A stretch of DNA of 64,000 nucleotides from Octopus sinensis (Eukaryota): contig NC_043014.1 in NCBI RefSeq assembly GCF_006345805.1, positions 36,642,001-36,706,000 on the forward strand, given 5' to 3'. The notes beneath the pieces are model-generated. The model had not been told where the DNA came from, did not search any database, and saw only the letters and a program-made list of their open reading frames with translations. The position numbers and the translations under genes were made by a program. This document shows positions 1,480 to 61,503 of this stretch, in pieces. Position 1 is the stretch's first letter; every line of letters begins with the position of its first letter.

Positions 1480-1553
1480 TAGAGTCAAATATTTATATCC
1501 GGGGAAAACGTGAGTTGGCTGTTACTTGAAAGATTCGCTGAATCAGCAGTAAG
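1480..1553 (-). other. Diverged homolog of the short terminal exon seen in genes B, C and D (possible 3' end of gene A)
   Basis: 1400-1590 aligns by eye to 25850-26040 (taactg..gaa.aaag.actcagt...aaatatttat...cagcagt..ctg.aaaa). tttctttttcag acceptor at 1554. Confidence 0.35.
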
Positions 1554-2699
1554 CTGAAAAAGAAAGGAAGTTTTGTTAATTGAGAAAGAAACGATATGTA
1601 TGTATGTATGTATGTATGTATGTATGTATGTATGTATGTATGTATGTATGTATGTATGTATATATGTATATATGTATGTATGTATGTATGCGTTGCTTAC
1701 CCATGCTTTTTAACTGAACTGAATTAAGCTTTGTAAGTGTTTGAGTAAAAGAGGATCAGAAGCGTAAGTAAATGACAGCTAAAAGTAGACCTGATCGGTG
1801 TCTACGACAGACGCATTTGAGTAAAGTTTGTATTTGACTAAATAAATAATTATTCAAATAATAATCATGATTATGATAAAGAAAGTGAACAAAATATTGC
1901 ATAGGATAGCATAGAAAATATTGCATAGAATTTGAGAAATATCTTCAACGTCTTTCAATTCTGGCAGGCACATCAAACGTTCGTTGTAAGATATAAATAA
2001 TATGACCACTTGCTTATCGGGAAATTTGTAAGTTCGATTTTTAAAGGAAATTTTCATTATTTTTTTTTAAGTATCATCATTACTTCGGTGAAATTAAGAA
2101 ATTAACTCATAAATAGATGAAACCATGGAATCCATCACTTACAGAGAGAGAGAGAGTCTCATATATATGTATATATTTATGTATTATGTATGTGCCCACA
2201 CGTGTCATACATACACAGACGACGGCTGAGGGTAAATATAATACTAACCGGGTGGTTTCTGTTACTTTTTAGTTTTCTTTTTTGCAAGATCCTTAATGAA
2301 GATTGACCATAAAAAGCAGGATTGCGGCAAATGTTAGAATTTTAGTAATATTCGCACCATTCAATTTAACTGTAATAGAGAGAAAAAGATATGATATTCT
2401 TTCCTAAATTTGGTATAATATCAGAAATTTCAGAGGAGGGGTAAAATCGATTAGGTCGATTCCAGTACTTGACGATCCCGAAAGAATGGATAGCAAATTC
2501 AATTACTGTGGAATTTGAAATCAGAAAGTAAAGCACATAAAATGCCTCCAAGCATTTTTTCCGGCGTCCAATGATTCTGCCAGCTCGCCGCCCCAGAAAA
2601 AAAAAAAATATTGGGGATTTACATAAACACGCGTAAACAATGATAAGAAAATCGGAACAAAATTCCACATTAAAAGGAAAATGCGATCCAGGAGTAACT

Positions 2700-3400
2700 A
2701 AAAATCCCCAAAGATCCCGAGTCACCCTGTTCACCAAAGTCATTCTTTTGCATTGCTAGGTAAGGGACTTCTATAAATTATTCACAGAACCCAACTTCGG
2801 AAAAGATGAGCCAGCTGGTCTTCATCGGCATCCAGAATTTACTTGAGGTCGTTGTCGTTTTTACTGACCACTAATTTTCAATAGAATGTCTTGCTGTAAC
2901 ATACACAGACCGCATTATCCGGCTGACAGAGAGCTGTGTCTGATGACAAAATAGGTGACTGGCGCCCTGCCTCGGCCTATGCTTGATCCCAGACTGAAGC
3001 TTTGTCAAAGAGACGAGCTTTGGAAAAGCACGTCTAGCAAACGGTGATCGTATTTACTCACTGTGAAGCAAATGCTGGAGATGTCGTATGCTCAGCGTGT
3101 ATCTGTGCGTAGTTAGTCACTGCATGCGGCGCTCTTCACCATCTGAAAAGCGGAACACGTTCCCTCCACAGAAAACGGAAGAACAAACATTTTATTGTCA
3201 GCCATGAAGAGAAGCAAGGCATGGCAGTGAAGAGAAAGTACTGTACATGACGTCACCTCTTCCCCGTTCTTGTCTGTCTAAAGGCCTGGACTCAACCAAC
3301 CCCTGAGCAATTTGGCCGGCCTATCTATCCAGCTCCTCAAGAAACTGACGGAAGGCATTGGCCAACAAATCCAATTACCGAGCTGCAAGTTCAATGCGTT
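2700..3400 (-). mobile_element. Degraded L1/Tx1-like 3' fragment
   Basis: Reverse strand gatgccgatgaagaccagctggctcatcttttcc resembles the GFDDNQLASLFQ region of the 32-35 kb element. Confidence 0.4.
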
Positions 3401-57647: not shown

Positions 57648-58844
57648 ATGATGCAAACTGCCAATACAAACAGCAGGATGAACTATTTAGCGCTAAACTA
57701 TTAAGCACAATTCGTACGTAATTAAGCCAGCAGCACTTAGTTGAACAAATACTTCCGCGCATGCGTAATACAATAATGGTGGTGTTTTTAACTGTTATAT
57801 GGGAATGTAAATATGTTTGCAAATTGTTTTTGTTACTTGTTATTCTGTGATCTGAATACTTTTATTTTAATAAATGTTGCTTACTGCAAGTTATGGATGA
57901 TTCTTTTATGACTTCATTGCTTTCAGGCTTAGCTTAAGGTGTTTTCGTGCCCGACATCACAAAATGCGCCTGAATAAACATTGCCGGACAGCAAATAGAG
58001 ACTCGGACATTGCTTGGAAAAAATTTTTCCTTTTTAACCTCGTATATAGTACGCACTGGGGATTTTGACTTTTAAATTTTGGAGAAAAAAATGTGGATTA
58101 TATTACCACCTTTGAATTTGAGATACAAACACTCATAACAGTTTTCTTTTGAAATTTCACTCCATGAGATTGATACTATGAAATTTCTCGAAGTGATATC
58201 TGTCATTTACGTTTAATTAAAATATAGTTTCTTTTAAAATGGAAAAGTTAATTATACTTAAATCCAATTTTTTGCCTTACGTTTATATTCTCATCATATT
58301 TTACCTCACAAATTTTTTCATTCATATTTTTGTTGCATGGGAACGAAACTATGAAATTCTTTATGTTTTCTTCTATCATTAAAGTTAAGATAAATATATT
58401 TTGCTTTTAAAATAAAAAAGTTATTCAGATCTAAACTTGATTGGTGGCGTTACTTACTCTCCTATAACGTTGCTACAAATTTTGATGTAAACTTTTTCTA
58501 CTGGACCAAATCTCAATTATTTATGCCAAAATATAGCTAGGGACCAGCCCTCTTCAAAAATGTTAACAGTTTTCAATTTGGTTAAGAACTGAGTTAGTTA
58601 CAAGCTCTGAAAGATGCTGCGTATGAATAAATTGTAACTTTAAGTATATTATTCAATTACTACCGTAGTTGGATGATATAATAGATAGCTAGATATATTC
58701 ATACATACATACATACAGACAAACATACAAACATACATGCATGCATACATACATGCATACATACATACATTCATTCTTAATGTTGAAAAACAAGTAGTAA
58801 CTGCTGAACAAAGAACTCAGTACACTATATAGAGGAAATATATT

Positions 58845-61503
58845 TATTTATTCCCAAGAAAGTTGACTGTGATGTTGACTTCGAAGTTTTGGAAAAGATG
58901 TTAAGCAAACAGCATTCTGTAAAAGGGAAGAATTGCCATCATATAGAGAAACAATGGTTAGGTTAGGAAGAAGGTAACATGTATACATATTCACACGCGC
59001 GCGTGTTTGTGCACGCGCGTTTATATGTGTGTGGTTATGAATATAAATAGATAGATAGACAGATAAAATAGATAGACATACATACATACATTATACATAC
59101 ATACATACATACATACATGCATGCATACATACATACATACATGAATATATCTGATATTGCGTGTACAAATACATGTAAAACTGTCATGGATATGTTTAGA
59201 GCTCCAACTTCCTTCCTTTAGATTTGTTAAATAAGTTCTTAAAAGTTTTCAATTCACAGAAAATGTAGAGAAAATGTAAGGAAATAAAGTACAAGTTTAT
59301 ATTATAGTTCTTACCCGGATCTGTTTGGATCCCTACAATAGGTGTATCAAGGATATTTATATACTCAAACATTGCATGTTGACAGGCAACAATTTATTTC
59401 GTTAATTTATAGATGTTATGTTTGGAGTTGGATGGACGGCAAGTCACGTTGTAAGTATTTGGGGTCGGAAATAGAAGGAAAGCAATTGGATGAGGGGGGA
59501 AGTATAATTTATTCTTTTATTTCTGTCTTTATAATTGTCTTCTTTCTTCTTCCCTCTTACTGCTTCCCACTTTACTTTTTTCTATGTAGTTTAGATCTCT
59601 TTTCCTTCAAATTTTCTTTTCGTATTCATCACAACTATTCCTATAATTTCTTCATTTCAATATTATTTCTTATGTGCTTTCACATCTATCTAGATGAAGC
59701 AACTGAGTCCCAGATATAGTCATTTCAAGGCGGCGAGCTGGCAGAACCGTTAGCACGCCGGGTGAAACGCGTAGCTGTATTTCGTCTGCCGCTACGTTCT
59801 GAGTTCAAATTCCGCCGAGGTTGACTTTGCCTTTTATCCTTTCGGGGTCGATTAAATAAGTACCAGTTACGCACTGGGGGCGATGTAATCGACTTAATCC
59901 CTTTGTCTGTCCTTGTTTGTCCCATCTGTGTTTAGCTCCTAGTGGGTAGTAAAGAAACAGATATAGTCATTTCCCTTTCTCACATTAACTTGTAGTAGTC
60001 GTTATCGTACTCGTTTCGGACCCACATATAATGCTTTGAATTTCGTTGCACTATGGCATCTTAATCTGTTTCTTTTTTTTTTCTTTTTTTTTTTTCAATT
60101 ATTCAAGTGATACCATTGACTACTCTTTACCTCTTCGACACAGCGATGATAACGCATTTTATAATTAGCTAACAGTTAAGCTATTTATTTGCTTGAACAT
60201 TTTTACATTAGTATTTAATTTGTAGTTTAATCGAAATATAACATTATTCTATTTTCAACTCTTATTCATTTAATTAATTATTTTTACCCCCACCCCCGTT
60301 CCTACTGATTCAGTATGTCTTTTCCCCTAATGAACTCTGCAAGAAGATTACATTTCTTGGATACCTACATTCTGAACGCAGAAATGCGGGATTCGCATAC
60401 CTCAACAAGATATCTAGAAACTTATGCATGGATATATTTCCCTCATTGAAATGGATAGTAATATTAGCATGTAGTGCAGCGTCGCTTAGACTTCTTGCCG
60501 TTATATCAAGTCACATCTTGAAGTTATTTCTTTTGCAATCCAAGTGCAGGAGATTGCAACCGGATTTCTAATATGCAAAAGCGATAGTCAACACTTAAAC
60601 CCTCAAGACGCATCACTAAATATTGATTATGCTACTCTTCTGTTGAGGCCATTGCATATCTGATGAGAATCAGACCAAAACAATCATAGAGATACGACCT
60701 TTCAATGCAACATGATGTTACTGCTAAATCAATAAACCATACTGTTTATAGGAAAAAACTGCTCTGGAAGAAATATAGACAATGTCTGTGTTTTGAACAT
60801 ATGTGTACATATCAACTCGAAGAATATTTGTAGAATATTTCCATCAAAACTTTACCAAACGCAAACCTATCACGCCTCGTATTGCTGTTTGCGTCAGAAA
60901 AGTTAAATGATATATAGTCAGAGAAGTTATGAAAATAGCTGCCGAATTTAGTTGCTAGGATTGTATTTATGGACCACTACTTCGAAACATTCAGAAAGAA
61001 GAAATAGTCTACATCTTTGGTCGCAAACGAAGTTCCTTGAGTTACACCCGAGTTTTCATTTTACCAGAGAGATATCAAAGCAAAATCTAGGGGCTCCTAC
61101 ACAATTTTTGGATAATCATTTACGTTACAACAGGATGTCCAATAAAAATCACCCTCCTTACCAAGTAGGCTTAGTAAGGTTGCTGATTTTGTTGCCGATG
61201 AACACAACATCCGACGGTTAATGGGTTAAATGTTATCAGCAGTACTATAAGCGATATGACATGACGTACGTACATACACACACACACACATTGCTTTGTC
61301 TTTCACTTGGAGAATAATCGTGGCAGAGAGCGGGAAAACTTGTAAGCACAAGCAAAGCATTTTACGCTCTTCTAGTTCTGTGACCTACTTTCCTTCTTAT
61401 AAAAAATATTACAACCTTATAGAATATGATAAAAATAAGTAAAAACATTATCTACCTGCTTTAGCTTTAGGAGATGTTCGATTGAATGCTTTCAGATTAA
61501 TTT
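58845..61503 (-). CDS. Gene D: 3' part of a further paralog (stalk 61456-61503, exon 61162-61244, terminal exon 58845-58916); Ig exons would lie beyond the window
   Basis: 48-nt phase 1-1 exon xINLKAFNRTSPKAKA whose end resembles the gene A stalk (KANA/KDNA). Introns align with gene B 27240-27430 and 29060-29620. Confidence 0.55.
59727..59957 (+). mobile_element. Same SINE family with 16-bp TSD
   Basis: TSD cagatatagtcatttc at 59711-59726 and 59958-59973. Confidence 0.85.

Follow-up and report, generated by a model that had tools for sequence, protein, structure and literature searches.

A probable octopod-restricted tandem array of small, fast-evolving V-C2 immunoglobulin-superfamily genes in Octopus sinensis

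Introduction

The locus examined here raises the question of what is encoded by the repeated, exon-sized units on the minus strand of a 64,000-nucleotide stretch of Octopus sinensis DNA, located at about 36.642-36.706 Mb of CM016876.1 (L003) and called the window throughout. A sequence-only reading had described these units as a head-to-tail array of at least four divergent immunoglobulin-superfamily (IgSF) genes with V-C2 ectodomains, in a probable cephalopod genome. The source was guessed correctly, as 33,461 nt of the window are 100% identical to O. sinensis CM016876.1. Cephalopods combine large brains and complex skin and suckers with an innate-only immunity whose recognition molecules are poorly known, and lineage-specific IgSF clusters are common in animals. 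An octopod-restricted, fast-evolving array of immunoglobulin (Ig) genes that evades Pfam profiles would be a candidate for lineage-specific recognition, be it immune, neural or reproductive. We conclude, with a probability of about 0.7, that the window is a piece of such an octopod-restricted tandem array of small IgSF genes for secreted or anchored recognition proteins.

Results and Discussion

Exon plan and number of units

Four units, A, B, C and D, lie head to tail on the minus strand, and each closes with a short terminal exon, homologous among the units, and an AATAAA or ATATAAA signal (Table 1). The first base of this shared terminal exon is 1553 in A, 26000 in B, 46407 in C and 58916 in D, and the same element is kept at matching sites in Octopus bimaculoides, where the syntenic region lies in reversed orientation at 16.155-16.187 Mb of CM046620.1 (L001) with about 85-90% nucleotide identity to the window. 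The repeat at 26.0, 46.4 and 58.9 kb was also considered as a transposon; this was rejected, the repeat being the shared terminal exon with its poly(A) signal.

Upstream parts of the plan are shared by A and B. Both signal exons are exactly 49 nt long, run from ATG to GTAAGT and end in phase 1; they are 73% identical across 141 nt including the 5' flank. All four Ig exons (V_A, C2_A, V_B and C2_B) have an AG acceptor and a GT donor, lengths divisible by 3 and run from phase 1 to phase 1. The two V domains share 36% identity (E = 3e-18) and the two C2 domains 29% (E = 5e-5), and splicing signal, V and C2 exons in silico gives an open frame in both genes. A family hidden Markov model (HMM) was run against all stop-to-stop open reading frames (ORFs) of at least 20 codons on both strands of the whole window. 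Its only matches were the V, C2 and signal exons of A and B (two of each), the V relic of C and, at a weak score, the hydrophobic tail exon of A, with E-values of 1e-19 to 9e-48 over the four Ig exons; further signal, C2 or hydrophobic tail exons were scanned for in units B, C and D of the window and none were found. An all-against-all BLASTP of the six-frame ORFs was swamped by microsatellites and transposons and yielded only the V-V and V-relic matches.

The sequence-only reading thus described the plan well: repeated minus-strand units with a 49-nt signal exon, phase-1 Ig exons, stalk and terminal exons were proposed, and all these exon types were located, the proposed outer limits of 1480 and 61503 coinciding within a few bases with the terminal exon of A and the stalk exon of D. 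The count of at least four genes has to be lowered. Two intact ectodomains (A and B) and a broken C stand, but C is a pseudogene relic and D is a 3' end only, which leaves only A and B as verifiable genes, next to the relic and the 3' end. An array containing such a relic and such a 3' end points to birth-and-death turnover. The symmetrical phase-1 exons would permit exon duplication or skipping, as we infer because the stalk exon of A is duplicated and two isoforms of relatives (P0016, P0019) join V directly to stalk or tail exons.

Unit A

The product of unit A is 100% identical to a 282-residue XP protein (P0003), 'uncharacterized protein LOC118766816 [Octopus sinensis]'. The NCBI model joins the signal, V and C2 exons of this gene to stalk copy 1 and to an exon at 6921-6791; the second stalk exon, the exon resembling a glycosylphosphatidylinositol (GPI) attachment signal and the shared terminal exon are not part of it. 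The 3' region of A carries a tandem duplication of about 2.4 kb (5976-7400 and 8392-9720), in which the stalk exon was doubled with both copies intact. The same duplication also doubled the last coding exon of the NCBI model, the upstream copy of which (about 9217-9070) has decayed. That the tail exons of the NCBI model are exonised repeats was considered and rejected, homologous exons being present in O. bimaculoides paralogs.

At the nucleotide level, the exon at 2369-2293 matches the last coding exons of two O. bimaculoides paralogs at 78% and 74% identity, and either stalk exon of A can be joined to it in phase. By inspection, its tail KLNGANITKILTFAAILLFMVNLH consists of N-G-A, a spacer NITK and 15 mostly hydrophobic residues up to the stop, and it is predicted to be GPI-signal-like. 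Judged from these exons, A can encode three forms: an anchored one, the NCBI form with a disordered tail, or one ending in ...DNAAYC via the shared terminal exon. In the latter exon (1553-1492) the ancestral frame reads AYC followed by a stop, and the O. bimaculoides ortholog continues as AYCPIQRTFQGTANSRFPQK. Comparison with the O. bimaculoides protein suggests a 1-nt shift that shortens the tail, because the remainder of the ortholog tail is still recognisable in another frame of the window.

Unit B

The best protein match of B is O. bimaculoides LOC128250267, at 71% identity and in syntenic position. The earlier statement that no gene name could be assigned has accordingly been overtaken: A is LOC118766816 and B is the ortholog of LOC128250267. 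Protein searches retrieved no near-identical O. sinensis or O. vulgaris protein for B. The gene table of the O. sinensis record (L003) spans the C2, stalk and terminal exons of B yet lists gene A only, and because it covers these 3' exons, B is taken to be an apparently intact gene that is unannotated in this assembly. Its 232 codons are open in both species and all framework cysteines are retained.

The C2 exon of B has three candidate donors, at 31381 (phase 1), at 31379 (phase 0) and at 31353 (phase 2, as in the NCBI model for O. bimaculoides). The counterpart of the GTGAGC donor of A is in phase 0 here, not in phase 1. A scan of the window found no hydrophobic 3' exon for B, and all three candidate donors give a short hydrophilic tail; most simply, B would be a secreted protein.

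Predicted fold and C-termini

The Pfam and structural checks proposed in the sequence-only reading gave a divided outcome, with Pfam profiles below threshold and AlphaFold2 predicting a V-like/C2-like pair. On the exon translations, Pfam detected only ig on V_B, at 19.8 bits against a cut-off of 21.8, and nothing on A; on 29 family members, ig was found at E <=0.01 in 2. A sequence-profile search of the PDB was marginal as well (best E = 0.004), the matches being antibody light chains and Fc-gamma receptors. With an alignment of 4 sequences, AlphaFold2 reached a predicted local distance difference test score (pLDDT) of 44; the model used here was built with 29 family members and has a mean pLDDT of 83.5, with residues 17-225 above 90 and a tail that is disordered from residue 237. 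DSSP assigns 9 strands to predicted domain 1, in which C41 and C112 lie 71 residues apart; this domain is V-like. Predicted domain 2 has 7 strands, a tight C-C' hairpin at 169-172 and C150, W165 and C212; it is C2-like, the distinction from the C1 or I class resting on strand count. The Ig hallmarks are found across the 29 members as C41 and D-x(3)-Y-x-C112 in domain 1 and C150, W165 and C212 in domain 2.

The best PDB matches in Foldseek are all chains with two Ig domains, namely Fab light chains, gamma-delta T-cell receptor, butyrophilins, CD4 D1-D2 and VCAM-1 D1-D2. Probabilities are about 1.0 with E 1e-4 to 1e-5, at 8-16% identity and a best TM-score of 0.51 (VCAM-1 D1-D2). On the strength of the model, a tandem V-like plus C2-like Ig fold, placing the family in the IgSF, is predicted with confidence.

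Family members also share a signature, which reads G-F-x-C84 ... C97-W-K-x(4)-C104-x-D-x(3)-Y-x-C112 in domain 1 and F-R-C ... W ... C ... C, including C188, in domain 2. A and B carry all its elements, except that O. sinensis B has L in place of the family W98 (C-L-K). The extra cysteines (C84, C97, C104 and C188) imply two additional disulfides, in a putative pairing.

The C-termini of the relatives differ. Hydrophobic GPI-signal-like ends are found in P0005, P0010, P0017, P0023, P0025, P0027 and P0037, short soluble tails in P0001, P0013 and P0015, and Thr-rich mucin-like stalks in P0022 and P0023. Two members, P0024 and P0038 (LOC115221679 and an Argonauta protein), have a transmembrane segment and a cytoplasmic tail, in which inspection revealed no immunoreceptor tyrosine-based inhibitory or activation motif (ITIM or ITAM). 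The proteins of A and B stop within about 60 residues past the C2 domain, and their assembled models contain no transmembrane segment or cytoplasmic signalling tail. Lectin, fibrinogen or chitin-binding Pfam domains were found in 0 of the 29 members.

Extent of the family

A profile of four members was searched with HMMER against 1.84 billion representative proteins at E <=1e-3. This gave 44 matches (clusters at 50% identity), 40 of them at E <=1e-10, and no tail of generic Ig proteins. The 26 representatives that were traced all come from O. bimaculoides, O. sinensis, O. vulgaris or Argonauta hians and are named 'uncharacterized', 'hypothetical' or 'Ig-like domain-containing' only. Two word-indexed single-sequence searches retrieved the closest orthologs and one paralog only, a profile search of that kind yielded no additional members, and the exhaustive HMMER search was needed for the rest.

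An array of this kind was found in O. bimaculoides, where at least 7 family genes lie head to tail on the same strand at 16.165-16.342 Mb, over about 180 kb. An additional O. sinensis family gene is present at 6.47 Mb on the same chromosome. Copy number is about 10 or more loci per genome, and paralogs within the cluster share 31-46% protein identity. Database entries of the same family include LOC118766816, LOC128250267, LOC106880707, LOC106880715 and LOC106880708 and UniProt A0A0L8FXF0, A0A0L8FP14 and A0A0L8IEM8; they have the same exon plan and all are automatic predictions. Paralog LOC106880715, for example, consists of signal, V, C2, a 39-nt stalk and a terminal exon encoding KLCEANITKLLALAALLLFLGKHR, every exon being in phase 1. 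A further divergent C2-type exon of the family (P0047) was seen in Logan contigs L006 and L007 (SRR11869394, SRR11869391); the contigs look genomic and give no evidence of transcription, because the frame reads through the exon end.

A literature search by locus and UniProt identifiers, and in general terms, found no paper on this V-C2 family in the library covered. A match to a known, conserved family had been set out in advance as a finding that would refute the sequence-only reading; the models match only entries called 'uncharacterized' or 'Ig-like domain-containing'. The genes are best described as a new lineage-restricted family inside a well-known superfamily, present in databases only as unnamed predictions. 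For annotation, this yields the unannotated gene B, corrected 3' exons of LOC118766816 with a probable GPI-anchor exon, and a family signature with an HMM-ready alignment.

Rate of evolution

Between O. sinensis and O. bimaculoides, a single pairwise comparison of B over 232 codons gives synonymous (dS) and nonsynonymous (dN) divergences of 0.136 and 0.183, and a dN/dS of 1.35. The flanking introns of B are about 86% identical, conservation of the exons does not exceed that of these introns, and dS matches the intron divergence. Amino-acid changes are distributed unevenly, affecting 4/56 conserved, 27/82 intermediate and 37/87 variable positions (conserved versus variable, Fisher p = 3e-6). 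The same bias is seen in A, with changes at 8/52 conserved versus 32/104 variable positions; its protein is 65-76% identical to that of the O. bimaculoides ortholog, the value varying with the alignment. Variability is spread across all non-core positions and forms no single focused hypervariable patch. This pattern fits a functional fold with a fast-changing surface, a description that covers both positive selection and weak surface constraint.

Proposed organisation of the array

The genes are made up of phase-1 exons, namely a 49-nt signal exon, a V-like and a C2-like exon, a single or doubled stalk exon of about 39 nt and candidate alternative last exons. As the last exon either a hydrophobic, GPI-attachment-signal-like exon or a short hydrophilic tail with poly(A) signal could be chosen, and this choice would set whether the membrane-bound or the soluble form is made. 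Sequence features suggest glycosylated, extracellular products of about 220-290 residues that would be secreted or attached to the outer leaflet of the membrane. A could be either anchored or secreted and B would be secreted only. The exposed faces of the two Ig domains would serve extracellular protein-protein or protein-surface recognition, and most likely the products are extracellular recognition proteins. The array itself changes by duplication and decay, with surface residues shifting fast and the disulfide and core framework staying.

Several observations weigh against this interpretation. The gathering thresholds of Pfam V-set, ig, I-set and C2-set_2 were not reached. The restriction to octopods rests on the 26 traced of 44 representatives, with about 18 untraced. 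The dN/dS of about 1.35 for B is the value of a single pairwise comparison, carries no test of significance and could partly reflect relaxed constraint. The 43-nt stalk exon of B violates the phase-1 rule, and its tail is ambiguous, with three possible readings. Exon use, that is, of the GPI-like exon and second stalk of A and of the whole 3' end of B, rests on splice-site logic, homology and NCBI models, and GPI anchoring was judged by inspection alone.

Comparison with known systems

Several known systems resemble the array in part. In architecture, vertebrate CD2/CD58/CD48-type proteins and insect Beat or Dpr proteins come closest, and in the structure search the tandem Ig domains of butyrophilin, CD4 and VCAM type; all of these are unrelated to it in sequence. 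Proteins of the CD2/CD58/CD48/SLAM group have a similar ectodomain with a membrane-distal V and a membrane-proximal C2 domain. The CD2 family mediates cell-cell recognition, is encoded by clustered paralogs and has GPI-anchored and transmembrane members, the anchor being acquired via alternative 3' exons (CD58). The likeness, which extends to GPI-signal-like and transmembrane members and clustered paralogs, is an analogy and not membership. CD2-family V domains lack the canonical disulfide, whereas that between strands B and F is present in the octopus V domain, which has the conserved cysteines C84, C97 and C104 in addition (with C188 in domain 2), and profile and PDB searches detected no sequence relationship to the CD2 family. 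With butyrophilin, CD4 D1-D2 and VCAM-1 D1-D2 the octopus proteins share a common tandem Ig fold, but only as a fold class; whole-chain TM-scores are low, and the octopus proteins have no B30.2 or further domains.

Beat, Dpr and the IgLONs, small proteins with two or three Ig domains and either a secreted or a GPI-anchored form, serve as recognition labels and belong to partly clustered multi-gene families. The architecture of Drosophila Beat/Dpr and vertebrate IgLONs is alike, but there is no detectable sequence similarity and the octopus genes diverge much faster between species.

With FREP/VIgL, VCBP, Alr and NITR the array shares clustered, divergent, lineage-limited IgSF genes. Members of the FREP/VIgL group (FREP, CREP, GREP) join IgSF domains to a fibrinogen, C-type lectin or galectin domain; no such domain is present in the 29 octopus members, and the tails of A and B are short. 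VCBPs have two V domains followed by a chitin-binding domain, whereas in the octopus proteins the V and C2 domains are followed by a short tail, and a chitin-binding domain is absent. Alr and NITR proteins are transmembrane receptors with signalling tails (ITIM/ITAM) or charged transmembrane residues and high allelic polymorphism; A and B have neither a transmembrane segment nor a cytoplasmic tail. The family is placed outside FREP/VIgL and VCBP because no lectin, fibrinogen or chitin-binding domain was found in 29 members, and, by the lack of a transmembrane segment and tail in A and B, outside NITR and Alr as well. The sequence-only proposal of an uncharacterised diversified family is upheld as far as the genes are clustered, rapidly diverging, V-like plus C2-like and found in octopods only.

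Possible functions

A function as diversified innate immune or allorecognition receptors of the NITR, Alr or VCBP kind, with V-C2 ectodomains that bind non-self and expression in hemocytes or epithelia, can be entertained tentatively. It would account for the tandem cluster with its birth-and-death relics, for paralogs of just 31-46% identity within the cluster, for dN/dS >1 over a conserved framework, for the lineage restriction and for predicted secreted next to anchored forms, as in several immune IgSF families. It is not easily reconciled with genes in the window that lack a transmembrane or cytoplasmic signalling motif, with two transmembrane members lacking ITIM/ITAM by inspection, with a lectin or effector domain in 0/29 members, with variability over all non-core positions instead of one hypervariable site, or with a modest copy number (about 10 loci or more in each genome). 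Two proteome supplements on octopus skin mucus also gave no family match, a weak negative. An immune role of the family is possible, and nothing found supports it specifically. The larger proposal that octopods evolved their own diversified V-C2 recognition system (for non-self, allorecognition or host-microbe contacts), with paired GPI-anchored and secreted isoforms made by 3' exon use, is more doubtful. If true, an immune-type IgSF cluster would have been invented independently in octopods, which are not known to have variable immune receptors. About as doubtful is a role as cell-adhesion or neuronal-identity labels of the Beat, Dpr or IgLON kind, which would bind each other or a partner family in the nervous system or suckers. 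The two-Ig build with GPI-like, transmembrane and secreted variants and the clustering of paralogs agree with it, and there is precedent in the clustered adhesion genes, the protocadherins, that octopods expanded independently (PMC10084454). The profile search, however, gave no similarity to Beat, Dpr or IgLON at E <1e-3. Wiring molecules are usually conserved between close species, and the octopus orthologs are unlike them in having 65-76% protein identity at about 87% nucleotide identity and dN/dS >1. If the function is ordinary adhesion, the array would be a routine lineage-specific IgSF expansion.

Sperm-egg or seminal recognition, with sexual conflict driving the fast change, would also be in agreement with dN/dS >1 and lineage restriction, and one member has a weak Izumo-Ig match (E = 0.0019). 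This lone sub-threshold Pfam match is probably due to chance, and known gamete recognition proteins do not typically form families this large with GPI-like, transmembrane and secreted variants; a reproductive role seems improbable. Slightly more improbable still is that the units are functionless decaying duplicates, their open frames chance survivals and the database models prediction artefacts. In favour of this, C plainly is a relic, the stalk exon of B is out of phase, B has no O. sinensis gene call and a dN/dS near or above 1, and the terminal exon of A would differ by 1 nt from that of O. bimaculoides, with a shortened tail. Against this, A and B both retain open frames and intact splice sites in their signal, V and C2 exons, the 232 codons of B are open in both species with all framework Cys and Trp kept, its substitutions avoid conserved columns (p = 3e-6), and NCBI models A with exons that are not predictable by homology alone. 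Complete non-function of A and B is unlikely.

Table 1. Exons, exon relics and repeat copies located in the window
Feature	Position	Strand	Evidence and remarks
A exon 1, signal peptide, 49-nt coding part, phase 1 end	23413..23461	-	ATG to GTAAGT; 100% match to P0003
A V-like Ig exon, 327 nt, phase 1-1	14092..14418	-	AG/GT; family HMM E = 9e-48; AlphaFold2 9 strands, pLDDT >90
A C2-like Ig exon, 303 nt, phase 1-1	11607..11909	-	AG/GT; family HMM E = 3e-37; AlphaFold2 7 strands
A stalk exon copy 1, 39 nt, in NCBI model	8754..8792	-	AG/GT, phase 1-1; homologous to O. bimaculoides LOC106880715 stalk exon
A last coding exon of NCBI model, ...FVWLT then stop, disordered tail	6791..6921	-	Tail pLDDT <50; paralogous exon L002 2349-2411
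A stalk exon copy 2, 39 nt, intact, outside NCBI model	6296..6334	-	AG/GT, phase 1-1; 88% over 33 nt to LOC106880715 stalk exon
A alternative terminal exon, predicted GPI-signal-like tail KLNGANITKILTFAAILLFMVNLH then stop, phase 1	2293..2369	-	Homology to paralog exons; in-frame assembly
A shared terminal exon, ATATAAA; phase-1 reading AYC then stop	1492..1553	-	Homologous to last exon of O. bimaculoides LOC106880708 and to P0004 tail
B signal exon, 49 nt, MLLAIILLTMTSYTSA, phase 1 end	39787..39835	-	88% nucleotide identity to O. bimaculoides LOC128250267 exon
B V-like Ig exon, 324 nt, phase 1-1	36846..37169	-	Family HMM E = 7e-38; Pfam ig E = 0.001, below cut-off
B C2-like Ig exon, 297 nt to donor 31381	31353..31677	-	Family HMM E = 1e-19
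B stalk exon with AG/GT boundaries, 43 nt in both O. sinensis and O. bimaculoides, length not divisible by 3	29488..29530	-	
B shared terminal exon, AATAAA, phase 1 CCLMNIFCAYS then stop	25940..26000	-	90% identical to O. bimaculoides L001 23401-23668
C V-exon 3' relic, 75 nt (last ~25 codons)	54720..54794	-	43% identity over 42 aa to V_B
C terminal-exon relic, AATAAA, early stop in ancestral phase-1 frame	46366..46407	-	
D stalk exon, 48 nt, AG/GT, open solely in phase 1	61456..61503	-	Flanks collinear with B stalk-exon flanks
D terminal exon, AATAAA, phase 1 CCLLNIFSKTSKSTSQSTFLGINK...	58847..58916	-	Frame homologous to O. bimaculoides P0012 tail
SINE-like repeat copies	3614-3781, 29954-30189, 30752-30980, 30984-31166, 35757-35907, 59727-59964, 62874-63109		

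Units C and D

The V-exon relic of C, together with about 1 kb of the following intron (to about 53741), has 71-72% nucleotide identity to B at 36917-36530 and 80-87% to O. bimaculoides B. Nothing homologous was found upstream of it, and HMM and homology scans of the window found no signal, C2 or stalk exon for C, which to judge by these remnants is a pseudogene relic. It retains a stretch at 49.2-49.9 kb that resembles part of the 3' intron of A. A near-perfect inverted repeat (55839-56214, 92% over about 380 nt) is situated a short way upstream of the V relic and may be what remains of the event that truncated the V exon.

Within the window, D consists of a stalk and a terminal exon only, and its Ig exons, if any, lie beyond base 64000. 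The stretch from 63.1 to 59.3 kb is collinear with the 3' region of B from 30.2 to 27.2 kb. At the place in O. bimaculoides that matches D (L001 139-288), the sequence is like the intron directly after a C2 exon, and no gene is called there. A segment of 4.3 kb that includes the stalk exon of D (59558-63884) has no counterpart at the orthologous O. bimaculoides position (L001 733-781); either O. sinensis gained it by insertion or duplication, or O. bimaculoides lost it by deletion.

Repeats in and around the units

The window is AT-rich (GC 32-45%), packed with microsatellites and transposon debris, and devoid of long ORFs; Rfam and tRNA scans across it gave zero matches. Arrays of (GAA)n, or (TTC)n on the coding strand, occur at 14500-15547 (1,048 bp) and 37246-37882 (637 bp). 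They lie in intron 1 of A and of B, each stopping about 80 nt upstream of the V-exon acceptor, and in the O. bimaculoides ortholog of B, where this intron is far shorter, the array is missing. Because long GAA/TTC tracts can impede transcription, these arrays might affect the expression or splicing of A and B.

The intron between the V and C2 exons of B holds a degraded retrotransposon without long terminal repeats (non-LTR; 32261-35700, plus strand), where local GC rises up to 45%. Its reverse-transcriptase domain (Pfam RVT_1, E = 4e-11) is split over several ORFs. A repeat of about 170-240 bp that resembles a short interspersed element (SINE) is present in at least 7 copies in the window at 80-94% identity, with no tRNA or Rfam match, and three of the copies are grouped directly downstream of the C2 exon of B. 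In the spacer between units C and B, the ORF at 42114-42389 (plus strand) encodes a homeodomain-like helix-turn-helix (Pfam HTH_23, E = 3e-6), of a kind that is typical of the N-termini of Tc1/mariner-type transposases.

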